Made by a program: the position numbers and the translations under genes
In this document: in pieces, positions 4 through 29,142 of the stretch
Position numbering within the stretch: the stretch's first letter is position 1
Layout: each line of letters starts with the position of its first letter
NCBI RefSeq assembly: GCF_000737315.1
Contig: NZ_JMCB01000001.1
Span: 620,001-684,000 of the forward strand
Reading direction: 5' to 3'
DNA length: 64,000 bases
Source: Hyalangium minutum
Lineage (GTDB): Bacteria; Myxococcota; Myxococcia; Myxococcales; Myxococcaceae
Notes under the pieces: generated by a model
Database searches by the model: none
The model's input: the letters and a program-made list of their open reading frames with translations, nothing else
Told to the model about the DNA's origin: nothing

Positions 4-49
4 GCACCGCCCGGCGCGGCTTCGATTCCCGCCACTTCCATCCTGAGAA
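4..49 (+). repeat. tmRNA (ssrA)-like 3' end fragment, att-like copy 1
   Basis: gcaccgcccggcgcggcttcgattcccgccacttccatcc: T-arm (GCGG-TTCGATT-CCCGC) plus acceptor 3' strand; near-identical to 17799-17843. Confidence 0.7.
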
Positions 50-128
50 GCCCGAGACGTGGAGGTGCCACGTTCCGGTGGAGCACCCAAATCGCTGCGC
101 TTAGCGCTGCGCGCAGGCGAGGGCTCAA

Positions 129-1958
129 GTGGATGCCCGTGCTCTGGGGATTCACGCGTCCCGTGCCCATTCATTGGGCATGAGGTTCCCTCCCCTGCCC
201 CTGAACCTTGAGTCGCGCCGCGCTCAGGTGTTCCCCGTCCTGGACGCCCGGGACCGCGAGCGCATGCAGCGCTTCGGTGAGGTCCGGCGCTTCAGGGAGG
301 GTGCGTGCCTGGCTGCGGCGGGGCGGCCGAGCCCCGGGCTGCTCGTCATCGCCCAGGGCCGCGTAGCCCTGTCCCGGCGCGATGGCTTGGGGCACAGCGT
401 TCCCATCGTGGAGGAGGGCCCGGGACAGTTCCTCGGCGAGGTGGCCCTGCTGTCCGGACGCCCCGCGCTCGTCGACGCTCACGCGGTGGGCGAAGTGGAG
501 GCGCTGGTCATCCCTCCGCACCGTCTGCGCGCGCTGTTCGTGGCGGAGGCGGACCTCGGCGAGCGCATCATGCGCGCCCTCATCCTGCGTCGCGTGAGCC
601 TGATCCAGACGGGTGCGGGCGGGCCCGTCCTGGTGGGCCCTCCCGAGTGCGCGGGCAGGGTACGTCTGGAGGGCTTCCTCTCGCGCAATGGCCACCCGTA
701 CCTCGTGCTGGACCCGGCGCGGGACGCACAGGCGGTCTCACTGCTCGCGCGCTATTCGCCGCGCGCGGAAGAGCTCCCGCTCGCGGTGTGCCCCGACGGC
801 TCGGTCCTGAAGAACCCCTCGGAGAGCACCATTGCCCGGGTGCTGGGTCTGCTCTCGGAAGTGGCCTTCGAGACGCTCTATGACGTCGCCGTAGTGGGCG
901 CGGGTCCCGCGGGGCTCGCCACCGCCGTGTACGCGGCCTCCGAGGGACTCCGGGTGCTCGTCCTGGACCAGCGGGCCTTCGGGGGGCAGGCGGGCGCGAG
1001 CTCGCGCATCGAGAACTATCTGGGATTCCCCACGGGCATCACCGGTCAGGCGCTCACCGCGCGCGCCTTCGTGCAAGCGCAGAAGTTCGGCGCGGAGATG
1101 GCTATCCCGGCAGAGGTCGCCTCGCTTCGCTGCGAGGCCTCCGGCGCGCCGCTCACCCTCGAGCTGACCGATGGGCGGAAGGTGAGCGCACGGACCGTGG
1201 TCGTGGCCAGCGGAGCACGCTACCGCCGTCCTGCGCTCGCGAACCTCGGCCAGTTCGAGAGCCGCGGGGTCTTCTACTGGGCCAGCCCCATCGAGGCGCG
1301 CATGTGTGAGGGCGAGGAGGTCGTGCTCGTGGGTGGTGGCAACTCCGCGGGCCAGGCAGCTGTGTTCCTCGTGGGCCATGCACGCCGGGTGCGCGTGCTC
1401 GTGCGCGGCCAGGCGCTCGCCGAGAGTATGTCCAGCTACCTGATCGAGCGCATGGCCGCTTCCCCTCATATCGAGCTGCTGATGGAGACAGAGGTGACGG
1501 GGCTGGAGGGCTCGAAGGAGCGCGGCTTGCAGAGGGTGCGCTGGCGTCACCGGCCCAGCGGACGCGAGGAGGAGCACGACGTGCGCCACCTCTTCCTCTT
1601 CATCGGGGCGGATCCGGCCACGGAGTGGCTCACGGGCTGCGGGGTGGCGCTGGACGCGAAGGGCTTCGTGCGCACGGGCGCGGAACTCCGAGAGGAGCCG
1701 CCCCAGGCGGCCACCTGGGAGGCCACCGGGCGAACGCCGTTCACGTACGAGACAAGCCTGCCCGGCGTGTTCGCCATCGGCGACGTTCGCTCGGGCTCCG
1801 TCAAGCGCGTGGGCACAGCGATTGGCGAGGGCTCGGCCGTGGTGGCGCAATTGCACGCCTACCTGGCCTCCACCGCCGAGGTTGAATCCCGGCGAAACCC
1901 GGCCTCCGCCCGAGGCACCTCACTGGCAGAAGGAGAGAGCGATCATGTACGCATGTGA
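129..1958 (+). CDS. Cyclic-nucleotide-binding domain + thioredoxin reductase-like FAD oxidoreductase
   Basis: N-terminal cNMP motif (GEVALL..R.A), FAD motif VVGAGPAG, NAD(P)H motif VGGGNSAG, C-terminal PGVFAIGD; true start may be ATG at 180. Confidence 0.85.
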   Translation: MDARALGIHASRAHSLGMRFPPLPLNLESRRAQVFPVLDARDRERMQRFGEVRRFREGACLAAAGRPSPGLLVIAQGRVALSRRDGLGHSVPIVEEGPGQFLGEVALLSGRPALVDAHAVGEVEALVIPPHRLRALFVAEADLGERIMRALILRRVSLIQTGAGGPVLVGPPECAGRVRLEGFLSRNGHPYLVLDPARDAQAVSLLARYSPRAEELPLAVCPDGSVLKNPSESTIARVLGLLSEVAFETLYDVAVVGAGPAGLATAVYAASEGLRVLVLDQRAFGGQAGASSRIENYLGFPTGITGQALTARAFVQAQKFGAEMAIPAEVASLRCEASGAPLTLELTDGRKVSARTVVVASGARYRRPALANLGQFESRGVFYWASPIEARMCEGEEVVLVGGGNSAGQAAVFLVGHARRVRVLVRGQALAESMSSYLIERMAASPHIELLMETEVTGLEGSKERGLQRVRWRHRPSGREEEHDVRHLFLFIGADPATEWLTGCGVALDAKGFVRTGAELREEPPQAATWEATGRTPFTYETSLPGVFAIGDVRSGSVKRVGTAIGEGSAVVAQLHAYLASTAEVESRRNPASARGTSLAEGESDHVRM

Positions 1959-2265
1959 TCATCTGGCCAATGCAGCGACGAGACAATCGGGGGTTGTCCC
2001 AAGCAGCGAGGGCTGCCAGGAATGTCTCGAGTCCGGAGACGAGTGGGTCCACCTGCGGCTGTGCCTGTCTTGCGGTCATGTGGGTTGCTGCGATGACTCG
2101 AAGAACAAGCACGCGACGAAGCACTATCGAGCGACGCAACACCCGGTCATCCGCTCCTTCGAGCCCGACGAGGAGTGGGGGTATTGCTACCCAGACGAGG
2201 CTTTCGCCGAGAGGCTACCGGCCCGGCATGAGGAGACTGCACCGGTCCATGGCGAAGCGCCCTGA
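1945..2265 (+). CDS. UBP-type zinc finger protein
   Basis: CQEC..W.HLRLCLSCGHVGCCD..K.KHA..H pattern; overlaps upstream stop, GAAGGAG upstream. Confidence 0.85.
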   Translation: MYACDHLANAATRQSGVVPSSEGCQECLESGDEWVHLRLCLSCGHVGCCDDSKNKHATKHYRATQHPVIRSFEPDEEWGYCYPDEAFAERLPARHEETAPVHGEAP

Positions 2266-2470
2266 GACATCCGTCCTTGGGGTGACACGGTCTCGTTCTG
2301 ACATGGTGCACACCCTCCGGCTTGCTACCTCGGCTCTCCCCCCGTTTGAGGGCAGTCGGCGGTTGGAGTGTGAAGCGGCGCCCCGCAGGACCTGAGTCGG
2401 TCTCCGCGGGGCGCCTGGGCTGCGCGTCCGCCTGGCTGCGCGAGGGCAACCGGGCGGTGAAGCCCTGTCC

Positions 2471-4990
2471 TTAGAAGGTGGATCCGTCCGCGCGCTTGCC
2501 GGCCGAGGCCGTGAGCGGCGAGAGCACGTTGTGCAGCACGAAGCTGCCCCCCACAGCGGCATCCGGGCTGCGGTTCATCGACACGCCATCGGCCGCGGCC
2601 AATGCGCTGGAATAGGTGAAGGTGTCGATGACGATGCCAGCGGCGTTCTTCACGGTGACAGTGTCGCCGGTGTTGCCCAGGCTGAGGCCACCGGTGGTGG
2701 CGCCCACGGCATTGGACACACCCGACGGAATACCGGAGCTCGCACCGAACACCACCAAGGCCTTGCCCGGAGCCAGCACGGTGCCGGAAGCAAACGTGTG
2801 GCGCGCCGCCGTGGCATCCCAGAGGACCCAGCCGCTGAGATCCATTTCAGTGCTGCCCACGTTGACCAGCTCGACGAACTCGCCAGCGGTGGCCGAGCCG
2901 GGCTCGTTGGCGAGGAGCTCATTGAGGATGACACGCCCGGAGGTCACAGCGAACGGGGCGTTGCTGGTATCCACGGGGTTGCCGTCCTGGGCGTCCGCGA
3001 TGCGCACGAGGGTACGCGAGGAAGTCGAGGCAGGCAGCAGCCAGGCATAAGAGCCCGCGGAGGCCGGCACGTTGGCGGCGATGAGCGTCCAGGTGGCGCC
3101 GTTGTCGAGCGAATACCGGAGGTCCACCTGGCTCACCGCGGAGGACGTCCAGGTGATGTTCTGGACGGAGCCCGGGGCCCACTGCTCGCCACCGTTGGGG
3201 GCGGTGACGGTCAGCGTCGCGGGAATCTCCACGCAGCTGATGCCATCACCCGTGTAGCCGGAGTTGCAGGCGCACGTGCGCGAGCCGGGGAGGTTCGTGC
3301 AGGCGGCGTTCACGCTGCACCCGCCGTTGTTCACCAAGCACTCGTTGTGGTCGCCAATGACAAACTCCTGGCTGAGGGATGCGGAGAACGTCTGGATCGG
3401 CAGCGGCGTCATCAGGTACGCGAGGTTGGACCCCGGATCGAGCTGCATCGAGGAGTAGGTGCCTGGAAGCATGCGTACCTGGAAGCGGCCGTCGGCTCCA
3501 GACAGGGGAGACAGATCATTCCAGCCGAGGCCTTGATACACCGCGCCCCGCAGGTGCACGTTGGCCACCGGCTGGCCACTGCTGTCGACGACCCGGCCAT
3601 TGAGCTGGATGTCATTGACCGTCAGGCTCAGTGGGGTGGAGGTGCTGAAGGGCTGGGAGAACAGCAGGGTCTGCGAGCCCGTGAAGCCGGGCGAGGTGAA
3701 CTCGACGCCGACGCTGTAGGTGCCAGGGACGAACTGCAGCAAGTACATACCGGCTGCATCCGTGGTGGCCTTATACATGGTGGTGCTGCTCGAGGAGCCC
3801 TTGGCATAAACGGTCACTCCCGCCGCGCTGCTGCCATCGGAGAACTTCACTTGACCGGAGAGGCTGATGACATTGCCCAGGACGAAGTCCTGCGTGGTGT
3901 TGCCTGAGAACGTCTGATTCGGCAAAGGCGTGACGAGGTAGGGGCCACCCGTGGGAGGCTCCAGTTGCATTGAGGAGTAGGTGCCCGGAAACATGCGTAC
4001 CTGGAAGCGGCCGTCGGCTCCAGTCAGGGGAGACAGCTCATTCCAGCCGTTGCCGCGATACACCGAGCCCCGCAGACGCACGTTGGCCACCGGCTGGCCG
4101 CTGCTGTTGACGACCCGGCCCTTGAGCTGGATGTCATTGGCGGTCAGATTGAGCGTGGTGGGGGTGCTGAAGGACTGGGAGGAGAACAGGAGCGTCGTGC
4201 CCGTGAACCCGGGTGAGGTGAACTCGACGCCGACGCTGTAAGTGCCAGGGATGAACTGCAGCGAGTACATACCGGCTGCATCCGTGGTAGCCCGATACGT
4301 GAAGCTGCCCGAGGGTGTTCTGGCATAAACGGTCACACCCGCCGCAATGCTGCCATCAGAGAACTTCACTTGCCCGGAGAGGCTGATGGCATCGCCCAGG
4401 ACGAAGTCCTTCGTGGTGTTGGCCGAGAACGTCTGATTTGGCAGAGGAGTGACGAGGTAGGGGCCACCCGAGGGAGGCTCCAACAGCATTGAGGAGTAGG
4501 TGTCTGGAAGAATGCGCACCTGGAAGCGGCCGTCGGCTCCAGACAGGGGAGACAGCTCATTCAAGCTGTTATTGTTTTGCAGCGCCGAGCCCCACAGGTG
4601 CACGTTGGCCACCGGCTGACCGCTGCTGTTGACGACCCGTCCGTTGAGCAGAATGTCCTGGGTCGTCAGATTGAGCGTGGTGGGGGTGCTGAAGGACTGA
4701 GAGGGCATCAGGAGCTGGCTGCCCGTGAAGTTGTGGAAGGCCAACTCGACGCCGACGCTGTAAGTGTCAGGGACGACCTGCAGCGAGTACATACCGGCTG
4801 CATCCGTGGTGGTCCGATACGCGAGGATGCTCGATTGCGCCCTCGCATAAACGGTCACTCCCGCCGCAATGCTGCCATCGGAGAACTTCACTTGCCCGCT
4901 CAGGGCGGCTTGCGCCCAGGCGGCACCAGGGAGCGACAACAACACAACGGCCACGAGGGCCGTCCGATAAAGGAGAGCGTGTAAAGGCAT
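2471..4990 (-). CDS. Secreted protein: 3 tandem carboxypeptidase-regulatory-like repeats, EGF domain, Ig-like domain, lamin-tail domain
   Basis: Signal peptide (AWA-QA), three ~175-aa repeats LSGQVKFSDGS, EGF pattern NECLVNNGGCS..AAC.N.PG...CAC..GY.GDG..C, C-terminal ILNE.LAN.......EFVEL.N. Confidence 0.8.
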   Translation of the reverse strand: MPLHALLYRTALVAVVLLSLPGAAWAQAALSGQVKFSDGSIAAGVTVYARAQSSILAYRTTTDAAGMYSLQVVPDTYSVGVELAFHNFTGSQLLMPSQSFSTPTTLNLTTQDILLNGRVVNSSGQPVANVHLWGSALQNNNSLNELSPLSGADGRFQVRILPDTYSSMLLEPPSGGPYLVTPLPNQTFSANTTKDFVLGDAISLSGQVKFSDGSIAAGVTVYARTPSGSFTYRATTDAAGMYSLQFIPGTYSVGVEFTSPGFTGTTLLFSSQSFSTPTTLNLTANDIQLKGRVVNSSGQPVANVRLRGSVYRGNGWNELSPLTGADGRFQVRMFPGTYSSMQLEPPTGGPYLVTPLPNQTFSGNTTQDFVLGNVISLSGQVKFSDGSSAAGVTVYAKGSSSSTTMYKATTDAAGMYLLQFVPGTYSVGVEFTSPGFTGSQTLLFSQPFSTSTPLSLTVNDIQLNGRVVDSSGQPVANVHLRGAVYQGLGWNDLSPLSGADGRFQVRMLPGTYSSMQLDPGSNLAYLMTPLPIQTFSASLSQEFVIGDHNECLVNNGGCSVNAACTNLPGSRTCACNSGYTGDGISCVEIPATLTVTAPNGGEQWAPGSVQNITWTSSAVSQVDLRYSLDNGATWTLIAANVPASAGSYAWLLPASTSSRTLVRIADAQDGNPVDTSNAPFAVTSGRVILNELLANEPGSATAGEFVELVNVGSTEMDLSGWVLWDATAARHTFASGTVLAPGKALVVFGASSGIPSGVSNAVGATTGGLSLGNTGDTVTVKNAAGIVIDTFTYSSALAAADGVSMNRSPDAAVGGSFVLHNVLSPLTASAGKRADGSTF

Positions 4991-5148
4991 GGGGACCTTG
5001 TCTTTGAAGAGCTGCGGGGAACGGTCTACTGCGGCACTCAGGCTTCTCTTGGAAACCGTGAGAACCATGCTGTTAGACCATGCGGGTCTGACTTTCTCCC
5101 CACCGCCTCTCCGGGTTCGGCCCCTTCCTCGCCGTTGCTATCGGCGTC

Positions 5149-6879
5149 TCATTTACCTCTTCCGGCTTCGGCGCTGCCCACGTTTGCGGGCGCAGTGGCG
5201 CGGTCTTCCTCCTCCAGGGCGTGAAGCATCTCACGCGCGGTGCGCAGCCCTGCCTCGTGGGCCCCGGCGAACGAACCGTTGTACATGGGCCGCCCTGTGG
5301 CCTCGCCTCCGAAGTACAGCCGCTTGGTGCACCCCTCTTCCGCCGGCTCCTGCTGTGAGGAGGGTTGATAGGAGCAGATGGACTCGCCCAGTTTCTCACG
5401 CAGGGGCCAGGCACCGGGCATGGCCGCGGAGTAGGCCCCGAGCACCCAGGGCTCCAGGCTCCACCGCGTGAGGTAGATGTCCGCCTTGTCCACGGCCTGG
5501 CCGATGTCGAGGGGCGCCGAGGCCCCGGCCGCTGTGCTGGCATTCGAGTGATACATCCGCACCAGGGCCGCCTTGGCATGCTGGACAGCCGCCTCGTCGC
5601 AGGGCTGGCGCTCCGGGGGCAGGGGCTTGTCGCCCGAGATGCTCGCGCACTGCTGCTCATACTGCTTCGCCCGCTCGCCGCCATAGAAGCCAATGGCGAT
5701 GTTCTTGCCGAGCGGCCGGATGACGAACGCCATCACGGAGTTATCGGGCGCCTGGTAGAGGACCCACGAGTTGGGGAGCGTGTCGCCCATGAAGTCAGGC
5801 TGGTCCTTGAAGTCGATGATGACCTTCTGCATGTTGCCCATGGGCAGACCTTCGATGGCCGCCAACTTGCTGGGCGGCAGCGGCGGCTCGAACTGGATCT
5901 TCTTCGCCTGAAGGACGCCAATGGACACCGTCACCAGCGCCTTGCGCGCCTGATAGCGCTTGCCGTTCTTCACGTCGACGACGACGCCGTCATCGGTGTA
6001 GGTGATCTTCGTCACGGGGGAGTTCAGGCAAACAGGCTCTTCCTTTCCAAAGGCCTCGATGAGGTTGCCCATGCCCTGCTTGATGAGGTCATCGTCTCCG
6101 GCCTCGAAGGCGACGGCGTCCACGGTGGAGTTCTGCGAGGTCTCCACCGCGCTCTCCAGGGGTCCGATGTTGCCCTCGAACAAGTGGCGGAAGTCGGAAT
6201 CCTGAGGCAGGTAGTGGGAGACTTGGTCGTTGGCGACCTTCTCCATGTGCTGACAGATCTCCTCGCGATCCGGATCCCTGGGAGCCTGACGCATGGCGGC
6301 CGTGTCACGGCACTCCTTCAAGCCCAGCTGAATGAGGCTGGACACCAGGAGGCGCTGGTAGAAGGCCTCCTCCTCCTGGCTGTACTGCTGGGCCTGGGCG
6401 CCCGAGAGAACAGTCACCTCTTTGCCATTGTCGAGGTAGATGGGGCCATCGAGAACGCTGGTGACGCGCTCGAAGCCCAGGGCGTCCGCCAGGGGGGTGA
6501 GGGGATTGATCGTCACCCCGTGAATCCAGGCGCCGCCCAGATCGATGGGAGGCCCCTTCTTCAGGGTGCTGGCCCGGCCGCCGATGCGGTCAGTGGCCTC
6601 GAGGATGAGGACGTTGTCGCGGCCGCCGCGCCGAAGCTCCTTGGAGGCCGTGAGCCCGCTGAAGCCAGCACCGACGATGATGGCGTCATAGCCCGTGGTC
6701 TTCTCGCAATCAGCCACGGCAGGGGGACGGGAGAGCAGCGCTCGGGAAGTGGGAGCGGTGGAGGCGGTAGCGCTCACGCACCCTGCAGGCACCACGAGCA
6801 GCAGCGCAGCCCAGATCCCCAAACGGGTCCCTGTCGCTGCCTGCATCGGATTCTCTGGCAGTTCATTGTTCAGGCTCAT
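5149..6879 (-). CDS. Flavin monoamine oxidase family protein, probable lipoprotein
   Basis: VGAGFSGL..A..L, EA.DRIGGR, DLGGAWIHG, C-terminal FGGEAT...GAHEAG.R.A; lipobox-like VPAGC. Confidence 0.85.
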   Translation of the reverse strand: MSLNNELPENPMQAATGTRLGIWAALLLVVPAGCVSATASTAPTSRALLSRPPAVADCEKTTGYDAIIVGAGFSGLTASKELRRGGRDNVLILEATDRIGGRASTLKKGPPIDLGGAWIHGVTINPLTPLADALGFERVTSVLDGPIYLDNGKEVTVLSGAQAQQYSQEEEAFYQRLLVSSLIQLGLKECRDTAAMRQAPRDPDREEICQHMEKVANDQVSHYLPQDSDFRHLFEGNIGPLESAVETSQNSTVDAVAFEAGDDDLIKQGMGNLIEAFGKEEPVCLNSPVTKITYTDDGVVVDVKNGKRYQARKALVTVSIGVLQAKKIQFEPPLPPSKLAAIEGLPMGNMQKVIIDFKDQPDFMGDTLPNSWVLYQAPDNSVMAFVIRPLGKNIAIGFYGGERAKQYEQQCASISGDKPLPPERQPCDEAAVQHAKAALVRMYHSNASTAAGASAPLDIGQAVDKADIYLTRWSLEPWVLGAYSAAMPGAWPLREKLGESICSYQPSSQQEPAEEGCTKRLYFGGEATGRPMYNGSFAGAHEAGLRTAREMLHALEEEDRATAPANVGSAEAGRGK

Positions 6880-7031
6880 GCGGGCCCTCTAGCCTCCGGC
6901 CGCCGTGAACTCAAGCGCCGAACCGCCGCAATTCCTTACGGGCGCGCGCAGCGACCGAAACCACCCCAAGACTCCTCGAAGCGAGTGGCCTTGGGTTACG
7001 GTGCCAGACCATCTCGTTGACTGGAGCATGC

Positions 7032-8015: not shown

Positions 8016-8163
8016 GCAACCCGGCCCAGCCCATGCTTGGACTCCTGTCAAAAACGGAAATCTACCTTGGGACACCTGCGCCTTCGTAGGCTCGTGGACA
8101 GTCTCCAGAATCACACGGCCGAAACAGCCCTCCCGGCATGAGTTCCGTGAAAGAGTGAGCGGC

Positions 8164-8547
8164 ATGAGCCGGACCGTTTTGATCCTGGAGGACGACGCGG
8201 ACATTCGCGCGGCCCTGTCCGCACTGCTCGACGATGCGGGCATGACCGTGGCTGCCGCTGCCCATGGCCTGGCGGGGCTTGAGCTGCTGGAGCGGATCGA
8301 CACACCGTGCCTGATCTTTCTCGATTGGTTGATGCCGGTCATGTCAGGCCGGGAGTTCCTCGAGTGCCTGCGCGCGAGTCCGAGGACGTGCACCGTGCCC
8401 GTGGTGGTGATGACGGCAGGCGAGAGCGAGCCTCCGCCCGGCATCGCGGCATTCCTCCGCAAGCCCTTTGGCATTTCCCAAGTGCACGAACTCCTGGCGC
8501 GTTACTGCGACCGAGGGCACGGCGAGTCCCCGTGGACTGACGCCTAG
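8164..8547 (+). CDS. Stand-alone response regulator receiver (CheY-like)
   Basis: VLILEDD, LIFLDWLMP, VVVMTA, FLRKPF. Confidence 0.85.
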   Translation: MSRTVLILEDDADIRAALSALLDDAGMTVAAAAHGLAGLELLERIDTPCLIFLDWLMPVMSGREFLECLRASPRTCTVPVVVMTAGESEPPPGIAAFLRKPFGISQVHELLARYCDRGHGESPWTDA

Positions 8548-8612
8548 TGGGAGTCGCAGTTTCACGGAGAGAGCACGCTGATCACGCCCCGGGCGGCCAA
8601 TGAGCGCGGGAG

Positions 8613-11220: not shown

Positions 11221-11221
11221 A

Positions 11222-16326: not shown

Positions 16327-16336
16327 GTGACGTAGC

Positions 16337-22000: not shown

Positions 22001-24600
22001 CTGAAGGGTGCGGCGGTGTCGGTCCCCAGCAGCGTGGCCCCGTCGTAGAACTCGACTCGGGTGACGGCGACGTTGTCCAGGGCGGTCGCGGTGAGCGTTA
22101 CGATCCCCCTCAGCGTCGCGCCCTCTCCAGGCGCGGTGAGCGTCACCGTGGGCGGTACGGTGTCCGGCGCTGCGGCGATCTCGATCACCTTGGCGGAGGT
22201 CAGGCCGTTGACGGTGACGGACAACAGGTACTGCCCTGGGGGCGTTGGGGGCACGGTGGAGGTGACGTGCGTGCTCGAGAACCCCTGCGAGGGCAGCACG
22301 GCCAGCGTGCCTCTTTCAATGTCCAGCAACGTCAGGAAGGGGAAGTCGGAGGCAGAGGAGCGGCTACTGCCACCACTGGCTTCCGAGATGCCACGCAACA
22401 GCGAGCCATTCACGGTGAAGGAAGCGCCAGGGATGAGCGGAGCGCTCGCGGAGACACTGACAATGCCAGGCCGCCACAGAGGGTTGGAGCCCGTGTCGTC
22501 GTACAGCTCTACGGTGTCCTGGTCCCCCCCCATCACGAGCACCTGGCCCGAGGGCAGCAGCGTGACCATGGCGAAGGATCGGCCTTGAGAGAGCGAGGCG
22601 GTGTCCGTCCAGGAACCGGTGGCCGGGTCATACACTTCATGGATCGGTTCAGGCGAGGGACTGTACCCGCCCACCACGAGCACCTTGCCCGAGGGCAGCA
22701 GCGTCGCCCTGTTGCCGAAGCGGTCCTTACGGAGCGGAGCGATGTCCGTCCAGGAGCCGGTGGCCGGATCGTACACCTCGACCCTTGTGCCGCCGTTATA
22801 TCCACCCGCGACGAGCACCTTGCCCGAGGGCAGCAGCGTCGCCGTGGCGAGAAACCGAGGCAGAGCCAGTGAGCCCGTGACAGTCCATGAGCCCGAGCCC
22901 GGATCGTACACCTCGGCGCTGCTCAGGTAGCCGGAGGAAGACGCACCCTGGCCACAGACGACGAGCACCTTGCCCGAGGGCAGCAACGCCGCCGCATGCT
23001 TGCTCCGGGCCTGAGCGAGCGAGCCGGTGTTGGCCCAGGTACCGGTCACCGGGTCATACAGCTCGACGCTGTTCAGGTTGCCGCTGTTGTTGACTCCACC
23101 CGCGATGAGCACCGTGCCCGACGGCAGCAGCGTCGCCGTGTGGTAGGCCCGCGCCTGAGCGAGTGAGCCGGTGTCGGCCCAGCGATGGGTGGCTGGGTCA
23201 TACAGCTTGGCGCTGGTCGTGTAGCCGGAGTCGTTCCTCCCCCCCACGACGAGCACCTGGCCCGAAGGCAGCAGCGTCATCGTGTAGTCGTCCCGAGCCG
23301 GAGTGAATGGACCGGTGTCTGTCCAGCTGCCGTTGGCTGGGTCATACAGCTTGGAGTTGATGCTGTAATACCCATACCCCCCGAGGACGAGCACCTTGCC
23401 CGAGGGCAGCAGCGCCGCCTTCTTGCCGTTGTAACTCCCAGGAACCAACGTGCTCGTCCCAGAGCCGGCGGCCGGGTTGTACAGCTCCGCGCTGGCCAGA
23501 GCCCCGCTGGTGCCAGTGCCTCCCACCACCAGCACCTTGCCCGAAGGCAGCAGCGTCGCCGTGTGGAGGGCACGGGCTTGGAAGAGCGAAACGGAGGAAG
23601 CCCAGTAGCCGGAGGACGGGTCATACAGCTCGGCGCTGGTGAGGGCACCACTGGAGTCAGCACCGCCCGCCACGAGCACCCTGCCCGAGGGCAGCAATGT
23701 CGCCGTGGCATGGAAGCGGGCCTGAGCGAGCGAGACAGCGTCAGCCCAGGAACCGGTGACCGGATCATACAGCTCGGTGCGGGCCAGGGCTCCGTTGGGG
23801 CCAACGCCGCCCGCTACGAACACCTTGCCCGACGGCAGCAGCGTGGCCGTAGCGCCGGAGCGGGCCTGAGCGAGCGCGCCGGTGGCAGACCAGGCGCTGG
23901 TGGCCGGATCATACAGCTCGGCGCTGGCCAGGGCTCCGTTGGGGCCAGCGCCGCCCGTCACGAGCACCTGGCCCGAGGCCAGCAATGCCGCCGTGGCGTC
24001 GGAGCGGGCCTGGGTGAGCGAGCCGGTAACGGACCAGGAGCCGGTGACCGGGTCATAGAGTTCGGCGCTGTTCAGGGCACTGCTGGCGCCAACCCCCCCC
24101 ACGACGAGCACCTGGCCCGAGGCCAGCAGCGTCGCCGTGTGGCTCCCACGGGCCTCCACGAGAGAGCCGATGGTGGCCCAGGAGCCAGTGGCTGCATCAT
24201 AGAGCTCGGCGCTGGTGAGCGCGCCGTTGGGGCCCTCGCCTCCCACGATGAGCACCTTGCCCGAGGGCAGCAGCGTCGCGGTGTGGTTCTTGCGGGCCTG
24301 AGCGAGCGAGCCGGTCGAGCCCCACGCGTTGGTGACCGGGTCATACAACTCGGCGTGGGCCTGGGGGCCGCTGGAGCCGTCCCCGCCCGCAACGAGCACC
24401 TTGCCCGAGGGCAGCAGCGTGGTGGTGTGACCGCTCCTGGCAGAGGACAGAGAGGCCGGCATCTCCCAACCCGCTGCGACCAGCCGCGAGGACTGACGAT
24501 GGGCCGTGGCCTCACCCGGGGAACGCTCCGAGGAGGGACTGCACGAGCCAAGGACGAGGACGAGCGCGGCCGCCATGAGTGAAACGAAGGTTCGAAGCAT
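19096..24600 (-). CDS. Large lipoprotein: 14 Kelch repeats + 11 bacterial Ig-like repeats
   Basis: LGSC lipobox after ATG 24600; 14 x (T)LLPSG.VLV.GG; 11 x D..PPTV.LTAP...A.AYD...N. Confidence 0.85.
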   Translation of the reverse strand: MLRTFVSLMAAALVLVLGSCSPSSERSPGEATAHRQSSRLVAAGWEMPASLSSARSGHTTTLLPSGKVLVAGGDGSSGPQAHAELYDPVTNAWGSTGSLAQARKNHTATLLPSGKVLIVGGEGPNGALTSAELYDAATGSWATIGSLVEARGSHTATLLASGQVLVVGGVGASSALNSAELYDPVTGSWSVTGSLTQARSDATAALLASGQVLVTGGAGPNGALASAELYDPATSAWSATGALAQARSGATATLLPSGKVFVAGGVGPNGALARTELYDPVTGSWADAVSLAQARFHATATLLPSGRVLVAGGADSSGALTSAELYDPSSGYWASSVSLFQARALHTATLLPSGKVLVVGGTGTSGALASAELYNPAAGSGTSTLVPGSYNGKKAALLPSGKVLVLGGYGYYSINSKLYDPANGSWTDTGPFTPARDDYTMTLLPSGQVLVVGGRNDSGYTTSAKLYDPATHRWADTGSLAQARAYHTATLLPSGTVLIAGGVNNSGNLNSVELYDPVTGTWANTGSLAQARSKHAAALLPSGKVLVVCGQGASSSGYLSSAEVYDPGSGSWTVTGSLALPRFLATATLLPSGKVLVAGGYNGGTRVEVYDPATGSWTDIAPLRKDRFGNRATLLPSGKVLVVGGYSPSPEPIHEVYDPATGSWTDTASLSQGRSFAMVTLLPSGQVLVMGGDQDTVELYDDTGSNPLWRPGIVSVSASAPLIPGASFTVNGSLLRGISEASGGSSRSSASDFPFLTLLDIERGTLAVLPSQGFSSTHVTSTVPPTPPGQYLLSVTVNGLTSAKVIEIAAAPDTVPPTVTLTAPGEGATLRGIVTLTATALDNVAVTRVEFYDGATLLGTDTAAPFSFSWDARTAGNGAHSLTVKAYDAGGQSATSPGVNVTVDNDLIAPTVSISAPAAGAAVTGTLTVTAMATDDQGVARVELYEGSTLLATGTTSPYAYSWNTRTGPNGDRTLTAKAYDAGGNVATAQVTVTANNDFTPPTVTLTAPTEGATLSGTVLLTATASDTSGISQVEFFLGPILVGTDSTAPYSFSYNTRGRLNGAWSLTAKAYDTLNNVGTSAAVNVTLDNDYTPPTVMLTAPGQGATLTGTVVLTATASDPSGISRMDFFVGSTQVGSATTAPYSFSYDTRLLPNGAKTLTAKAYDTLFNLGTSATVNVTFDNDLTPPTVTLTAPRQGATVSGNLVFTATASDTSGISKVDFFVDTFQVGTATTAPYSFGYNTRNLPNGAKTLTAKAYDTLNNVGTSAAVSVTFNNDLTPPTATLTAPVEGATLKGTVTLSATATDNVAVTRVEFYDGATLLGTDTASPYSFSWATRTAGNGAHSLTVKAYDALGQSSTSPGVNVTVDNDLIAPTVSISAPVEGATVTGTLTVTATATDNLGVTRVDFYEGSTLLGTDTSSPYAYNWNTRAGANGDRTLTAKAYDAGGNVGTAEVRVNADNDFTPPTVTLTAPAEGAPLKGTVVFTATASDNLAVTRVLFFIGTTQVGSDTTAPYSFSYNTRLLPNGAKVLTATAYDAVNNMGTSAPVNVTFENDFTPPTVTLTAPAEGETLSGTAVLTATASDPAGIARVDFFVGTTAVGSDATAPYSFSYNTRLLPNGAKVLTAKAYDTLNNLGTSAPVNATFENDFTPPTVTLTAPAEGETLTGTVVFTATASDAAGISKVVYFAGTTQVGTATTAPYSFSYNTRLLVNGSKVLTAKAYDTLNNIGTSAPVNVIFDNDLTPPTTSITSPASGSTVTGVVQIDAIASDDRGTITKVEFYQGSLLLGSVTTAPYTWSWDTTKVSIGNTTLRSRAYDGAGNSVYSTAVTVTVTR

Positions 24601-24704
24601 GTTCCCCCCTGCTGGAATCGGACAGCCAAGCTGCACGAACGGCCCCTGCTTGTCCATGCCAATCCCGTCTGCTCGGCCCAGTCTCCTCGCGGCGTCTTCT
24701 CCTC

Positions 24705-25196
24705 CTACTTCTGCTCCAGGGCATCCGCCATGGGAGGCACTGCGGGAGCGGCCGTCCGGGTGGAGGTGGTGCTCATGGTGGTCGCCCCACGCGGGACTTG
24801 CATCGAGTTGCGCTCCACATAGAGCTGCGTGCACACCGAGTTGGACTTGTTCCACTGGAATCCCAGGTAGCTCGTGTCGTTGAGCGAGGTGATCAAATCC
24901 ACCACCGACTGCGGAGGATTGCTCAGGGTGCACCATCCCATGTTGTTCAAGGCGTCAACGGCCTGGCACGTGAGGGTCCGTGAAGGGGAGGCGGTGTTGA
25001 TGGCGTTCACCGTGATGTTGCAGACGATGGACTGCTTCGTGTCCGCCGAGTTCTGCGCCGCAGCGATGGTCCCTCCCGCGAAACCATAGTTGGGATTGGC
25101 CAGGTACACGCTCACGTCGTAATTGGCCCGGGCTCCCGCGCTGGCCGCCGTGGCGGCGGCAGTAAGCACCAGGAACAGCAGTTTGTGGGCTTTCAC
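24705..25196 (-). CDS. Secreted hypothetical protein with four Cys
   Basis: GTG start with AAGGGAG RBS, signal peptide (ARA-NY). Confidence 0.65.
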   Translation of the reverse strand: MKAHKLLFLVLTAAATAASAGARANYDVSVYLANPNYGFAGGTIAAAQNSADTKQSIVCNITVNAINTASPSRTLTCQAVDALNNMGWCTLSNPPQSVVDLITSLNDTSYLGFQWNKSNSVCTQLYVERNSMQVPRGATTMSTTSTRTAAPAVPPMADALEQK

Positions 25197-25324
25197 GGCA
25201 TTCTCCCTTGTGGGGCGGTCCTTGGACCGCGAGTCACGCTTCGAGGGCTGAGCAGCTCCCCTCACATGGAAGTGAGCCGACGAGGCGGAGAACGATTCAG
25301 AAAATCAACGTGCTCCTGGGCCCT

Positions 25325-25352
25325 GCGGGTTCGATTCCCGCCGCCTCCATCC
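25325..25352 (+). repeat. tmRNA (ssrA)-like 3' end fragment, att-like copy 3
   Basis: gcgggttcgattcccgccgcctccatcc: perfect T-stem GCGGG/CCCGC and acceptor strand CGCCTCC-A. Confidence 0.8.
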
Positions 25353-25506
25353 CAAGAAGCCCAGCAATCTTCTGATGCTCGCCGAGCGTCGGGCGCAGCG
25401 AGGCTGACGCATCGCGACGCCAGGGTCAGAGCCCTGATGAGCTGAGGGGATTGAATCAAGCCGCTCCTTCACCGTCCTCCCTCCCCAGACACTGAAGGAG
25501 CTGACC

Positions 25507-25719
25507 GTGACTGACTCCCGCTCATGCCGCCGCTCCCATGGCCTTGTCCTCCTCGCAGCCCTGCTCGTTGGCCCCACGGCACTCGCCGACGCCGATGTCG
25601 AGGGCGCGCTCGAAATCTGCCGGCAGCAATGCCTTCCAGCATGCATCGAGTTGGCAGAAGTTCTCTGCTTGCGTCCGCGAGGCACTCACGCGCTACTCGA
25701 CTGCGGACGGTGTCTCTGA
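25507..25719 (+). CDS. Small secreted Cys-rich protein, possibly truncated at the inverted repeat
   Basis: AAGGAG RBS before GTG; hydrophobic signal LVLLAALLVGPTALA; six Cys in mature part; last codons lie inside the 25701-25747 repeat. Confidence 0.45.
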   Translation: MTDSRSCRRSHGLVLLAALLVGPTALADADVEGALEICRQQCLPACIELAEVLCLRPRGTHALLDCGRCL

Positions 25720-25747
25720 AATGTGCAGCGACTCGGGTGACTGACGT
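25701..25747 (+). repeat. 47-bp inverted repeat, left copy
   Basis: ctgcggacggtgtctctgaaatgtgcagcgactcgggtgactgacgt; 45/47 match to reverse complement of 28981-29027 (manual alignment). Confidence 0.9.
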
Positions 25748-25748
25748 T

Positions 25749-27266
25749 TCACTCCCGTTGACTCACGAGCTCAGCGCCCTTGGCCGCGATCATCATGGTG
25801 GCGGCAGCCGTGTTGCCGGAGACCGTGGTGGGGATGATGGAGGCGTCGATGACGCGCAAGCCCTGGGTGCCGAGGACATTGAGGCGAGGCGTCACCACGG
25901 ATTGATCATCCACCCCCATCTTGCAGGTGCCTGCGTAGTGATAGCAGGTGTCCGCCGTCTGGCGGACGTAGGCTTCGAGCTCGGCATCCGTTTGCACTTC
26001 AGGTCCCGGCAAGAGCTCCTGAGAGAACCAGGAAGCCATGTTGGGGTGGTGGCCCATGCGGCGGGCCAGCTTGACGCCGTGGATGCAACGCTGGAGATCC
26101 TCGGGGGCCGTGAGGTAGCGCGGATCGATGAGGGGGGGCTCGGTAGGGTTGGAGCTCGAGAGCCTGATGGTACCGCGGCTCTTCAGGAGCTGGAGATTGG
26201 GGTAGATGAAGTAGCTCTGCTGCTTGTCGGGAGGCAGATCCATCCCCTTCATGGTGCCGCTGGCCAGAGAGCACTCCACGTCCGTAAGGTGAGGGAGCGT
26301 GGAAGGATCCGTGGAGGTGAAGATCACCGCGCCTATGAGGCCGTAAGGCTGAGGCGGCAGGGGTTTCTTGCTCGCGAAACCGCCCGTGACGAAGAGGTCA
26401 TCTTGAAAGTTCTCGCCGACCCCGGGGAGCGCTGACACCACGGGGATCCCCATGTCGCGGAGCTGATCCTCCGGGCCCACCCCGGAGAGCAGCAAGAGGT
26501 GGGGGCTGCCAATGGCACCCGCACAGAGCAGGATCTCCCGCCTGGCGGGAAGTTCGACTTGTCGCTGAGTGCGCAGGTCGGTCGCCACCACGGCCACCGC
26601 CCGCCGCTCGGGGTCGAAGAGGATGCGATCGAAGCGGACGCCGCTCGCGATCTTCAGGCGGCGGGGCTTCCTGGCACCCAAGAAGTGGCTGAAGGCTGTT
26701 TCCCGCCTCCCCTGCTGGCTGATGAGAAACTGGAATGGGGAGACACCGAACGCGTGAGGGGAGGCGTTGTAGTCGAGGTTGTAGGGAATGCCCAGGTGGT
26801 TGCAAGCGCCTATCAACTCCATGACAAAGGGATCCGCCTTGGCATGGGTGATGTGGAGCCGCTGCTCGACGCGGTGGAAGGAAGGCAGCAGGCTCTCATA
26901 GTCCCAGCCCTCACAGCCCGCCTGGGCCCACTGGTCAAAGCCATACCTGCCACCGCGCACGTACACCATCGCATTGTGGATGCTGCAACCGCCCAGCGCC
27001 TTGGCCCGGGCGAGCCGGATGGTGCGGCCATTGAGCCCGGCCTGGGCGACCGAGCGGTAGCCCCATTCCCGCTGGGGATCACGAGAGACCAGCAGCCAGC
27101 GGGTGGGATCCCAGACGGTTGCGTCCTTCGGGGGGATGTCATGGCCGGCTTCCAGCAAGAGGATCCGGGCATCCGGGAGCTTCTCCGCGAGCATGGCTGC
27201 CAGCACGCAGCCGGCGGAGCCAGCCCCGAGGACGATGTAGTCGAAGGTCCCTTTGAGTGGATTCAT
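25749..27266 (-). CDS. GMC family oxidoreductase (choline dehydrogenase-like)
   Basis: VLGAGSAG, LLEAG, LGGCS.HNAMVYVRG, AGAIGSP.LL.LSG.G, YH..GTC.MG, LRV.DAS..P, GNT.A. Confidence 0.9.
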   Translation of the reverse strand: MNPLKGTFDYIVLGAGSAGCVLAAMLAEKLPDARILLLEAGHDIPPKDATVWDPTRWLLVSRDPQREWGYRSVAQAGLNGRTIRLARAKALGGCSIHNAMVYVRGGRYGFDQWAQAGCEGWDYESLLPSFHRVEQRLHITHAKADPFVMELIGACNHLGIPYNLDYNASPHAFGVSPFQFLISQQGRRETAFSHFLGARKPRRLKIASGVRFDRILFDPERRAVAVVATDLRTQRQVELPARREILLCAGAIGSPHLLLLSGVGPEDQLRDMGIPVVSALPGVGENFQDDLFVTGGFASKKPLPPQPYGLIGAVIFTSTDPSTLPHLTDVECSLASGTMKGMDLPPDKQQSYFIYPNLQLLKSRGTIRLSSSNPTEPPLIDPRYLTAPEDLQRCIHGVKLARRMGHHPNMASWFSQELLPGPEVQTDAELEAYVRQTADTCYHYAGTCKMGVDDQSVVTPRLNVLGTQGLRVIDASIIPTTVSGNTAAATMMIAAKGAELVSQRE

Positions 27267-27391
27267 GGGCGCTCCTGGGGCGAGTGAGTCTGAGCATCGG
27301 AAAAATGAAGGCCCTCCCCCTTTTTCCTGGGCGTTTCTTAGGAGGGTGCATCGCCCTGCCGTACATTCCGCACGGCGGCAGGAGGTGAGGC

Positions 27392-28903
27392 TTGCTGAAT
27401 CGAACTCAGCGGCAGCAGATCTATCAGCAGCTCAATGCGATCGTCGCCACCGTGCGCGGCATCGACCCCGACGCCGCCGACGATCTCTCCGCGAGTGTCT
27501 ACTCCATGTCAGACGACGACCTGGAGTGGATTGCGCGCGAGGTCGTTCGCGGCGATGCGTACGGCTGGTTCTGGCAGGCGTCGTGGAAGGCCATGGCGCG
27601 CGCGTGGCTGCTGGTGGTGTTCGCCGGTGGTCCGCCACGGGGAGCCTATGACGAGCCGTCGCCCCAAGTGATGGCCGGCCACCTGAACTACCTGCGCACC
27701 GCCTCGGAGGCGACGCTGCGCGCCGGGATCGTCCATCGTATCCTCGACGCACAGACCGGGCGCGATGCCATCGCGGGGATCGTCCCGATGCTCACGGATG
27801 CGAGCCGTGATGCCTGGGATCCCAGCCTGTTCACCGATCCGACGCAGCACCGCGGCAATGCCTACCGGTACATCATCAACGCGCTCCGTCCGACCCGGAT
27901 CCAAGTCTCGGACGCGGCGGAGGTTCAGTACCTCCGCACCCACCGGTCGACGTTCATCGAGCCCGTCTCCGGCAACCCGAACGCCGTCGTGTATCACCTC
28001 ACCCGCTATTACCTGAGTGAACCGGATGCCTTGTGCTCGGAGGTCTTGAGCTGCTCGCTGATATCGCAGGCCAAGAAGACCACGTACCAGAACATGACGT
28101 TCGGCTTCGTCCTCTACGTGCCGAAGGCCAATATCTGCAACGCGGGCACGATCGATCTGGTGGCCGCCCAGGTGCAGAACACCGCGCGCGGAATGAACCT
28201 CTCGGGGCGGAGCACCTATCGCCGGACCCAGCGCATCACCGACTTCCTGTCCCAGCTCGGCGGGAAGGCGCGGCAGGTCATTCCCACGCCAGACCAGATC
28301 CTCACCGGCACCAGCGTGCATGGCCACAATGAGCTGATCGTCCTCGGCACCTTCATGGGGCAGGTGCGGGCACGTGCGCTGTTCGTCAAGGTGAGCAACG
28401 GGTGCCTGTGGCGGTCGTTCGTGGAGGACGACGTGAAACACAAGCTCACCGAGCTGATCTTCGCCTGCGCCCAGGCACGAAGAATTCCGGTGATCCCCAT
28501 TCGCGACGACTCCGGTGAAGCGTCGAAGATCAGCTTCCTCGATTGGTACAGGAATCGCTCGCTTCCTCGCGAGGAGCCACGGAGCGTGCAGTCCTCCATC
28601 CAGGCGGTGGTCTCGTCATCGAGAGAGCTGGTCGTCGACGATCGCTTTCCGAACGTCCAGCTGTCGATGGGGCAGGCGCGGGCGCTCCTTGCGCGCGAGC
28701 TGAACGTGTCTCCGTTCCTGGAACTCTCCGCGCTGCGCAGCACCTATCGCCGATTCGCCGTCACGCATCATCCGGACAAAACTGCTGACAAAGAGAAGCA
28801 GGCCAAATTCGTAGTCGTCCGCGGACTCCTGACCCTCATCGAGGGGGAGGAGACCGGGACGCGCGAGCCGCTCCCGATTGCGTGGAAGAAGCAGCTGGAC
28901 TGA
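27392..28903 (+). CDS. Hypothetical protein with possible ADP-ribosyltransferase-like core and C-terminal J-domain-like HPD motif
   Basis: AGGAGGT RBS before TTG; YRY...SCS...HNE motifs; C-terminal LRSTYRRFAVTHHPDK. Confidence 0.7.
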   Translation: MLNRTQRQQIYQQLNAIVATVRGIDPDAADDLSASVYSMSDDDLEWIAREVVRGDAYGWFWQASWKAMARAWLLVVFAGGPPRGAYDEPSPQVMAGHLNYLRTASEATLRAGIVHRILDAQTGRDAIAGIVPMLTDASRDAWDPSLFTDPTQHRGNAYRYIINALRPTRIQVSDAAEVQYLRTHRSTFIEPVSGNPNAVVYHLTRYYLSEPDALCSEVLSCSLISQAKKTTYQNMTFGFVLYVPKANICNAGTIDLVAAQVQNTARGMNLSGRSTYRRTQRITDFLSQLGGKARQVIPTPDQILTGTSVHGHNELIVLGTFMGQVRARALFVKVSNGCLWRSFVEDDVKHKLTELIFACAQARRIPVIPIRDDSGEASKISFLDWYRNRSLPREEPRSVQSSIQAVVSSSRELVVDDRFPNVQLSMGQARALLARELNVSPFLELSALRSTYRRFAVTHHPDKTADKEKQAKFVVVRGLLTLIEGEETGTREPLPIAWKKQLD

Positions 28904-28980
28904 GTGCTACCGCTAGCCCGGATCGGTCACAGGAGACGGCTTGTCGCTCGGCAGCGTCCAGGGCGGATGTCCTGCGCAAC

Positions 28981-29027
28981 ACGTCCGTCACCCGAGCCGC
29001 TGCACATTTCAGAGACACCGTCCGCAG
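28981..29027 (-). repeat. 47-bp inverted repeat, right copy
   Basis: acgtccgtcacccgagccgctgcacatttcagagacaccgtccgcag. Confidence 0.9.
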
Positions 29028-29114
29028 GGATGGGGCGGCAGAACGAACCGATGAGAAATCAAGGCGTTCGCAGGTAACAGCGCGACCTGCTTGGGGTTTT
29101 GCTTCCGCCTTGCC

Positions 29115-29142
29115 GCGAGTTCGATTCCCACCGCCTCCATCC
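29115..29142 (+). repeat. tmRNA (ssrA)-like 3' end fragment, att-like copy 4
   Basis: gcgagttcgattcccaccgcctccatcc; two substitutions relative to copy 3. Confidence 0.7.

Follow-up and report, generated by a model that had tools for sequence, protein, structure and literature searches.

A detached array of ssrA 3′-end repeats in Hyalangium minutum, probably left by mobile elements of at least two arm families

What process could leave four copies of one short sequence on the same strand, each separating different gene blocks? This question is raised by a 64,000-nt stretch of Hyalangium minutum contig JMCB01000001.1 (the window; negative positions lie upstream of it). A 28-nt block, GCG(G/A)(C/G)TTCGATTCCC(G/A)CC(A/G)C(T/A/C)TCCATCC, is present on the + strand at 16-43, 17811-17838, 25325-25352 and 29115-29142, at the places where same-strand repeats had originally been described. 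Searching for 22-mer matches with up to three mismatches returned exactly four sites, all + (19-40, 17814-17835, 25328-25349 and 29118-29139), against a chance expectation of 0.01, and none of 100 shuffles gave four. A Hamming scan of both strands from -9872 to 64000, allowing up to 8 mismatches, found no fifth copy of the core. Copies 1 to 4 carry 3, 1, 0 and 2 mismatches to the consensus core, respectively, so that copy 1 is the most degenerate. The array is laid out as follows.

-75..-10: C-terminal remnant of DUF5953 (22 codons), just upstream of copy 1 and followed by a 16-nt class-A-like block
4..15, + strand: element-side block gcaccgcccggc, common to class A arms
16..53, + strand: copy 1, core 16-43 with 10 nt of type-1 tail (tgagaagccc)
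54..12015: composite cargo segment (segment A; Pfam), no integrase
9344-10114: split HK97-type capsid pseudogene, within segment A
10318-11980: DUF6310-DUF5953 pair, within segment A
12016..17690, + strand: kinase cassette (Pfam)
12051-12917: DUF2381, kinase cassette
12629-14692: Ser/Thr kinase 1, kinase cassette
14840..16326, - strand: intact insertion sequence with 43-nt terminal inverted repeats, between the two kinase genes
14863-16296, - strand: DDE_5 transposase of the insertion sequence
16423-17604: Ser/Thr kinase 2, kinase cassette
17691..17810, + strand: class A element-side arm (P arm) of copy 2
17811..17855, + strand: copy 2, core 17811-17838 with ~17 nt of diverged type-1 tail
17856..25269, - strand: segment B (Pfam), no integrase
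17890-19065: PPC-domain protein, segment B
19096-24936: 1946-aa Kelch/Big_7 protein, segment B
25270..25324, + strand: copy 3 upstream flank, resembling distal class B by eye (gaacgat..aaaatcaa)
25325..25371, + strand: copy 3, perfect core 25325-25352 with 19 nt of type-1 tail (caagaagcccagcaatctt)
25372..29026: segment C (Pfam), no integrase
25749-27266, - strand: GMC oxidoreductase, segment C
27392-28903, + strand: 503-aa protein with a weak DnaJ match, segment C
29027..29114, + strand: class B element-side arm of copy 4
29115..29142, + strand: copy 4 core; type-1 tail similarity ends right after ATCC
29143..34300, - strand: segment D, with low GC3 and no closing repeat (Pfam, GC3)
29169-30845: carboxylesterase, segment D
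31884-33556: inverted second DUF5953-DUF6310 pair, segment D

Segment A additionally encodes a cNMP-binding flavoprotein oxidoreductase, large secreted repeat proteins, an amine oxidase, a response regulator and a glyoxalase, and its GC3 is 0.71-0.89, compared with 0.92-0.96 in flanking core genes. Segments B and D also include ORFs of 186 and 228 aa, respectively. GC3 stays below that of the flanking genes from about -1700 to 34300, a zone of 36 kb whose outer ends show no att repeat or flanking direct repeat; core genes start again at 34369. Neither a core copy nor a type-1 terminator was found beyond segment D, and the internal core expected in segment A just before DUF2381, at about 12011, is absent.

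The block corresponds to the T-arm, acceptor strand and discriminator of tmRNA followed by TCC, i.e., the last 25-28 bases of ssrA. This origin had been proposed from the repeat itself, and comparison with the genome's own ssrA bore it out: copy 3 is identical at 25/25 positions from T-arm to discriminator, and the H. minutum tmRNA gene (L226 1893-2252, where L numbers denote loci; tag ANDNVELALAA) begins with the predicted GGGGGCG. The core also matches ssrA of related genomes. Similarity to ssrA begins exactly at the T-stem, and upstream of this point the copies show no resemblance to ssrA (z < 0.3). ARAGORN reported 0 tRNA or tmRNA genes in the window and Rfam nothing at gathering score, and the copies lack the full tRNA-like domain, tag frame, pseudoknots and gathering score of a tmRNA gene. 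Sub-threshold Rfam tmRNA (RF00023) matches fall on all four copies (best 30.4 bits; threshold 47), which agrees with the ssrA assignment.

Upstream of the cores, the arms fall into two classes: class A in copies 1 and 2, and class B in copy 4 and, by eye only, in copy 3. As originally noted, gcaccgcccggc directly abuts the core in both copies 1 and 2; it also precedes the core at L212, L214 and L180, and with one mismatch at L138. The motif AAATCAA, likewise noted before, lies upstream of both copies 3 and 4, and that of copy 4 falls inside the class B module. The class A arm of copy 2 shares 85.5% identity with L138 across 166 nt and is continuous with L212. The class B arm and core of copy 4 are 84-87% identical over 112-121 nt to L203, L192, L217, L138 and L134, loci whose neighbouring genes are unrelated, and the cargo of segment C has no counterpart at the other class B loci. 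The class B arm is a cargo-independent module of ~88 nt, or about 116 nt with the core. By visual comparison only, the copy 3 flank looks like this module minus about 45 nt; global alignment of the copy 3 and copy 4 upstream flanks detected no significant similarity (score -14; null -9.3 +/- 5). Both arm classes recur in other myxobacterial genomes, in line with the prediction of at least two element types. The arm of copy 2 contains four GG(G/A)ACG hexamers at 10-nt spacing (17694-17729). Relative to the core, these hexamers occupy -117/-107/-97/-87 in class A, while class B has them at -108/-98/-88, on a background of 0.2 per 160 nt. They are candidate arm-type sites to which the integrase or its excisionase would bind. 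Arm repeats are decayed or missing at copies 1, 3 and 4.

Alignments with other genomes revealed breakpoints at the repeats, as had been predicted, with homology ending exactly at repeat edges. Homology of the window to L212 and L138 stops at core+17 (17855), and that of H. minutum locus L225, on another contig, to L178, L130 and L188 stops at the 5′ edge of the core. Across 33 copies, the points at which the sequence following the core departs from the type-1 tail cluster at 0-5 nt or at 16-19 nt, or else the match continues through the whole terminator; beyond the tail, the left ends of the segments have nothing in common. Copy 3 (47 nt) is 96-98% identical to copies in many genomes. The kinase cassette is collinear with L212 (77-86% identity), where the orthologous cassette lacks the insertion sequence, and with L201 (about 70%), where cassette homology begins 5 nt past a core copy. 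Homologues of the Kelch/Big_7 protein (44-49% identity) come after core copies in L180 and L176. Arrays of 2-3 copies, 2.4-5.3 kb apart, occur in other genomes, and copies with unique non-ssrA upstream flanks are common there; the contigs scanned for copies came from genomes other than H. minutum itself.

The window encodes no integrase, as originally stated: none was detected in it by Pfam on ORFs or by tblastn, nor from -9872 to 64000 by six-frame hmmsearch with a family profile (E <= 10). At L130, L188, L178 and L142, a convergent gene for a 395-aa Phage_integrase/SAM_3 protein lies right after the core and terminator, and int and xis adjoin the repeat in complete relatives of the kinase-cassette element. 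Locus L225 of H. minutum has a frameshifted integrase together with xis and a DUF2381-kinase-kinase cassette. Among the best 120 of 694 integrase homologues, which were those examined, the closest from H. minutum is 94% identical to that of L130 and split by a frameshift.

An intact ssrA just upstream of the window, and a kinase-cassette-like element ending before base 1, were parts of the original prediction that failed. The 10 kb upstream contain no tmRNA or further core copy, and base 1 is preceded by the DUF5953 remnant and then the 16-nt class-A-like block. A high-GC3 SulP-DabA-antiporter operon lies in these 10 kb; three other Hyalangium species have kept it, and in them no ssrA or fragment was found within 10 kb either side of the operon. 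The true ssrA lies on contig JMCB01000032.1 of this draft assembly and adjoins M16 peptidase genes, as in relatives. With a conserved operon in the upstream 10 kb and the true ssrA located on another contig, the array stands apart from the gene that it targets.

We conclude that the repeats are probably att junctions or scars from mobile elements of at least two arm families that target the ssrA 3′ end, and that the array is a detached remnant; this reading rests on sequence comparison. Such elements would integrate site-specifically at the ssrA 3′ end in Myxococcaceae and Archangiaceae, and the attP of each would include a duplicate of the T-arm and acceptor strand of ssrA, often with 17-19 nt more or a whole replacement terminator. 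Because attP carries the ssrA 3′-end copy, each integration would add one direct copy. New elements entering at the copy that flanks a resident element would make the array grow by accretion, and each joint would read, in order, left element's arm, ssrA core and next element's left end. Class A would represent elements with a DUF2381 and two-kinase cassette, and class B a cargo-independent module; complete relatives have their tyrosine integrase and HTH_17 excisionase directly behind core and terminator. Since integrase/excisionase modules are gone from the window, its segments would be immobile, at best cis- or trans-mobilisable remnants. Most likely, we infer, an internal piece of an ssrA-linked array was relocated by chromosomal rearrangement; alternatively, a first copy may have entered a secondary site and the array grown from there. 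Insertion of the insertion sequence and deletions would have come later.

Other explanations fit parts of this evidence. An intact ssrA just outside the window, with a classical tandem island array starting directly downstream of it, would account for four fragments that share one strand and all represent the 3′ end, and Rfam does align window 1-43 as a 5′-truncated tmRNA. However, neither a tmRNA nor an extra copy lies in the upstream 10 kb, whose operon three sister species keep, likewise lacking ssrA or a fragment of it within 10 kb either side; the true ssrA sits beside M16 peptidase genes on another contig; and copy 1 is both the most degenerate copy and preceded by the DUF5953 remnant. 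This placement is thus highly improbable, and ssrA at the head of the array is rejected at the level of the present assembly. We give an equally small chance to the copies being functional RNAs (tRNA-like 3′ modules, mini-tmRNAs or terminators) retained for their own sake. A T-arm and acceptor minihelix can in principle be a substrate of tRNA enzymes, and Infernal aligned copy 2 full-length as a 'mini-tmRNA' at 30 bits, but every Rfam match is below gathering score, the flanks show no tmRNA homology, mismatches break the T-stem in copies 1 and 4, and by direct reading copies 1, 3 and 4 have not kept the 5′ pairing partner. Scarcely more credible is local duplication of one att scar, or gene conversion, in place of independent integrations. 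The 12 nt upstream common to copies 1 and 2 and the duplicated DUF6310-DUF5953 pairs would suit such an origin, yet the flanks are otherwise mutually unrelated and match different arm classes, which other genera have conserved next to other cargo, and the inter-copy segments share no sequence.

The strongest competitor, although still unlikely, holds that arm and core form portable sites and that integrase-less cassettes are captured, stacked and still moved in trans by a conserved ssrA-linked integrase and excisionase. Arrays at several loci other than ssrA would be explained if arm plus core served as a portable recombination site, and the idea draws support from the discrete ~116-nt class B module beside unrelated cargo in at least 5 genomes, the phased hexamers at a fixed distance from the core, the discrete break points and the many copies with unique non-ssrA upstream flanks. 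Against it, the sole close H. minutum integrase among the best 120 of 694 homologues is frameshifted, arms are decayed in 3/4 window copies, no cassette turned up in identical form at two sites with both of its ends intact, and segment left ends share nothing past the tail. This reading would cover kinase cassettes, DUF6310/DUF5953 pairs and secreted repeat proteins as cargo; if true, myxobacteria would have cassette arrays at several loci away from ssrA and a lambda-type functional analogue of the integron.

Detached att scars remain the favoured reading, and they have parallels in known systems. In the Islander database, tyrosine-integrase elements use the 3′ part of ssrA with T-stem sublocation (Williams 2003; PMC4383910); an element restores the gene and displaces its 3′ fragment, and repeated events give direct-fragment arrays that begin at intact tDNA and whose members each have their own integrase, arrays of 3 or more being rare (4 cases; PMC4383910). 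The H. minutum array has the same ssrA 3′-end/T-stem target and displaced direct fragments matching the genome's own gene (four + copies; copy 3 25/25), but it lacks an intact ssrA at its head (window and 10 kb upstream) and an integrase in any member (-9872 to 64000). Dehalococcoides carries many tandem islands between direct repeats of the ssrA 3′ end (McMurdie et al. 2011, PMC3146451). About half of these lack an integration module and were proposed to be cis-mobilisable and gathered by accretion, a conserved motif lies just upstream of each repeat, and a serine recombinase (DsiB) acts with a 20-bp repeat, all repeats lying within 100 kb downstream of ssrA (PMC3146451). Tandem ssrA repeats, integrase-less members and conserved sequence upstream of the repeat are thus common to both systems, whereas the myxobacterial elements have a tyrosine recombinase and a repeat of 28-47 bp or longer, and the H. 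minutum array is off ssrA. The CIMEs related to ICESt1 and ICESt3 of Streptococcus thermophilus are att-flanked segments without recombination genes, formed or kept via a related element at a flanking att; their target is the fda locus rather than tDNA, and mobilisation was shown by experiment. Three H. minutum segments (54-17810, 17856-25324 and 25372-29114) likewise lie between two att-type repeats and lack recombination and transfer genes, the first also holding an unrelated IS transposase, although their mobilisation is putative. Myxophages Mx8 and Mx9 integrate in the Myxococcus xanthus tRNA genes trnD and trnG. They share with our elements a myxobacterial tyrosine integrase and a small-RNA-gene 3′ end as attB, but they are complete phages, while the H. 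minutum target is ssrA and its sole phage trace is the split capsid pseudogene. The likeness to integron arrays, a row of integrase-less segments each with a conserved terminal recombination site, is analogy only: IntI, attI and attC are missing and the sites are ssrA-derived with lambda-like arms. We rejected integron membership on these ssrA-derived repeats and the lack of any kind of integrase in the window.

Tandem ssrA islands, integrase-less ones included, are already known from Dehalococcoides and the Islander database, and this genomic-island array is of an ordinary kind, only its position being unusual. In our literature search, no account of an ssrA-targeting element family turned up for myxobacteria. 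Such a family is now documented. It has an integrase, an excisionase, a replacement terminator and two or three arm classes, its typical cargo is Ser/Thr-kinase cassettes and toxin-like DUF6310/DUF5953 pairs, and its phased hexamers are directly testable candidate arm-type sites. The locus also indicates that att scars can survive as arrays far from their target gene. Because island-finding software expects intact tDNA at the head and an integrase per member, it would miss this 36-kb accessory zone. Together, these findings bear on how very large myxobacterial genomes acquire strain-specific kinase and secreted-protein genes.

A search of the window with a 22-mer, allowing up to three mismatches, returned exactly four matches against 0.01 expected. 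All lie on the + strand at the predicted positions, establishing the four same-strand repeats as real. They share a 28-nt core with the consensus GCG(G/A)(C/G)TTCGATTCCC(G/A)CC(A/G)C(T/A/C)TCCATCC:

16-43, + strand: copy 1 core, 28-nt common block
17811-17838, + strand: copy 2 core, 28-nt common block
25325-25352, + strand: copy 3 core, 28-nt common block
29115-29142, + strand: copy 4 core, 28-nt common block

A Hamming scan that tolerated up to eight mismatches and covered the whole window plus the 9.9 kb preceding it revealed no fifth core copy. The window contains no tRNA or tmRNA gene, and all four copies gave sub-threshold matches to the Rfam tmRNA model. The core pattern with a TCC tail had no match in viral contigs, and the plain 22-mer matched very many unrelated ones; both scans are uninformative.

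The original prediction assigned the repeats to the 3' end of ssrA, reasoning from a G3-U70 pair. Scanning 185,579 species genomes with a degenerate 28-mer yielded 100 loci, the source genome H. minutum not being among them. Several were intact tmRNA genes ending 3' in the core sequence, including those of an uncultured Archangiaceae MAG (L142) and a MAG labelled Myxococcaceae (L172), which both encode the tag ANDNVELALAA and have an M16 peptidase gene upstream of ssrA. We reached the H. minutum ssrA via this conserved neighbour, whose orthologue (83% identity) lies on contig JMCB01000032.1 (L226):

L226 1893-2252, - strand: H. minutum ssrA, adjoining the M16 peptidase gene, tag ANDNVELALAA (ARAGORN)

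This gene has the 5' end GGGGGCG and the 3' end ...ggctttcggacGCGGGTTCGATTCCCGCCGCCTCCA. Copy 3 is identical to it over 25 nt, which bears out both the assignment to ssrA and the reasoning from G3-U70. M16 peptidase genes also lie beside the Dab operon (the SulP-DabA-antiporter genes found upstream of the window) in H. rubrum; these were rejected as an ssrA marker, with 29% identity to the ssrA-linked gene, and are paralogues of it. The similarity of the copies to ssrA starts exactly at the T-stem, and the 30-110 nt 5' of each copy scored no better against true ssrA than random window sequence did (z <= 0.2). An Rfam alignment that presents copy 2 as a mini-tmRNA is therefore not meaningful and was rejected, as was the reading of the upstream flanks as diverged tmRNA sequence.

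Many non-gene core copies occur in related genomes, and their upstream flanks form recurring classes. Class A (...gggcgcgattctgc.agaggtttcgcaccgcccggc, followed directly by the core) is found at window copy 2, in H. versicolor (L138) and in two MAGs labelled Myxococcaceae (L212 and L214); its final 14-16 nt also stand 5' of copy 1 and of the L180 core. Class B, of about 88 nt, is found at window copy 4 and in L203, L192, L217, L138 and L134. Class B arm and core together are 84-87% identical over 112-121 nt, and the adjoining genes differ between loci. The flank of copy 3 resembles class B minus about 45 nt by eye but is statistically no closer to the copy 4 flank than random sequence is, so that its reading as a shortened class B is weak. 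A class C flank was seen outside the window only. Classes A and B are dissimilar apart from phased GG(G/A)ACG hexamers, which recur at 10-nt spacing at -117/-107/-97/-87 from the core in class A (window 17694-17729) and at -108/-98/-88 in class B (L203, L192, L217), against a background of 0.2 per 160 nt. There are none in class C, nor in the unique flanks directly 5' of integrase-bearing copies. These hexamers are candidate arm-type protein-binding sites.

On the other side of the core, the L142 and L172 ssrA genes and many fragment copies continue into cgagaagcccagcaatcttaaNgggttgctgggttttt, a terminator hairpin that we call the type-1 tail. Among loci that have DNA available beyond a full tail and tested positive, the tail leads into a convergent 395-aa tyrosine integrase with Phage_integrase and SAM_3 domains (L130, L188, L178, L142 and H. 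minutum L225, on contig JMCB01000005.1; remnants in L127 and L204). We conclude that the type-1 tail is the left end of an element which carries an integrase and supplies a terminator of its own to ssrA. Different terminators follow the current ssrA genes in H. minutum and H. versicolor, with a further copy 1.0-1.4 kb downstream. In a comparison of 33 copies, departure from the type-1 tail fell at 0-5 nt in six, including window copy 4, and at 16-19 nt in nine, among them copy 3 (with one indel allowed, copy 2 as well); a third cluster keeps the whole terminator, and four copies depart at intermediate points (23-34 nt). Most of the departure points are discrete ends of identity blocks and not random deletions.

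Homology between genomes ends at the core edges, which bears out the predicted breaks at the repeats. Window segments 12066-14646 and 16325-17855 match L212 at 77-86% identity, ending at core+17, and the L138 match covers 17691-17855. In L201, homology to the kinase cassette (DUF2381 and two Ser/Thr kinases) begins 5 nt past a core. The H. minutum L225 locus aligns with L178 (89% over 5.3 kb) and also with L130 and L188, and this homology stops at the 5' edge of the core. A complete element runs in the order core and terminator, int, HTH_17 excisionase, DUF2381, kinase, kinase, and H. minutum carries a second ssrA-fragment junction of this kind:

L225 9780-11302, strand not given: type-1 terminator, int pseudogene, HTH_17 excisionase, DUF2381-kinase-kinase cassette

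Its integrase is frameshifted (237 + 121 aa), and the contig terminates in an IS66 TnpB gene. Other arrays, of two to three copies spaced 2.4-5.3 kb apart, occur in H. versicolor, a MAG labelled Myxococcaceae and an uncultured deltaproteobacterium. L226 880-2252 contains the H. minutum ssrA itself and, downstream of it, a terminator of its own, a 1-kb mini-island and a fragment copy of 22 nt (two mismatches); the contig stops 0.9 kb further on, so that the assembly interrupts the real array linked to ssrA. In H. versicolor, the true ssrA is followed 1.4 kb downstream by a copy with a class C arm (L227 8017-9810, contig JAHXBF010000010.1), and the two have about 90 nt of identical downstream terminator in common. 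This unit is a very small element with long repeats at its ends.

The window was predicted to lack an integrase, and each search agreed. Pfam annotation of credible ORFs from -1.7 to 38.6 kb (negative coordinates lie upstream of window base 1) found no recombinase besides one DDE_5 transposase, and neither tblastn with the family integrase nor an unfiltered six-frame hmmsearch with the family profile gave a match in the window. The profile was built from the full-length members among the best 120 of 694 homologues, and the same six-frame search recovered both halves of the L225 integrase pseudogene. The features identified in and next to the window were as follows:

-75 to -10 (L001 9798-9863, upstream flank), strand not given: DUF5953 remnant of 22 codons, directly upstream of copy 1
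9344-9703 and 9785-10114, strand not given: split HK97-type major capsid gene, profile positions 17-128 and 166-277
10318-11980, + strand: DUF6310-DUF5953 pair 1
12629-14692 and 16423-17604, strand not given: Ser/Thr kinases of the cassette, matching PADLOC models PD-T4-6 and mad6 (E down to 1e-57)
14840-16326, strand not given: intact IS with the DDE_5 transposase and 43-nt terminal inverted repeats (93%)
19096-24936, - strand: 1946-aa protein with about 9 Kelch repeats and 11 Big_7 domains
31884-33556, - strand: DUF6310-DUF5953 pair 2

The IS separates the two kinase genes, and the orthologous L212 cassette lacks it. The PADLOC matches of both kinases are probably generic kinase-domain matches, and the cassette may have a defence role. 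The two DUF6310-DUF5953 pairs have diverged (60-64% amino acid identity, opposite orientation) and may represent a toxin/immunity-type module travelling with the ssrA-targeting elements. The split capsid gene is the sole phage structural trace in the region. Homologues of the Kelch/Big_7 protein (44-49% identity) follow core copies in L180 and L176, in the opposite orientation to the core. Window 38639-44785 (73% GC) holds very long overlapping ORFs on both strands (1754 aa on -; 453 and 1112 aa on +). PHROGs returned no match for nine unknown proteins, and no family matched the 367-aa minus-strand gene that was called 5' of copy 1 and whose reality is doubtful.

An intact ssrA had also been expected upstream of the window; this was not borne out. 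The 10 kb upstream contain no tmRNA and no core copy, and the true ssrA lies on contig JMCB01000032.1; the window itself comes from JMCB01000001.1 (620001-684000) of assembly GCA_000737315.1. That stretch encodes SulP, DabA and two antiporter subunits at a third-position GC (GC3) of 0.92-0.96. H. versicolor, H. gracile and H. rubrum share the Dab operon, with different genes after it in each and no ssrA fragment within 10 kb on either side. GC3 is low between about -1700 and about 34300 and recovers at a block of response-regulator, GGDEF and DapF genes. A 5-kb segment follows copy 4, and scanning to the window end revealed no closing copy or type-1 terminator beyond it. No direct or inverted repeat of 13 nt or more joins the outer borders of the low-GC3 zone, and tblastx of the true-ssrA and sister-species loci against the window gave noise or no match. 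With no upstream tmRNA, closing copy or border repeat, the array stands apart from ssrA and is truncated on both sides.

The array is best explained by ssrA-targeting elements of at least two arm families that integrated serially, or by accretion. Loss of the int-xis modules, an IS insertion and decay of three of the four arms would have followed; the array may also either have been relocated or have grown from a secondary-site copy. Tandem ssrA islands are well known (Islander). As in the H. minutum window, the tandem ssrA arrays of Dehalococcoides include integrase-less members, there read as cis-mobilisable elements (PMC3146451). We found no description of ssrA-targeting elements in myxobacteria in the literature. 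Tandem ssrA arrays themselves being known already, the more interesting features here are the orphan position of the array and its phased arm motifs.
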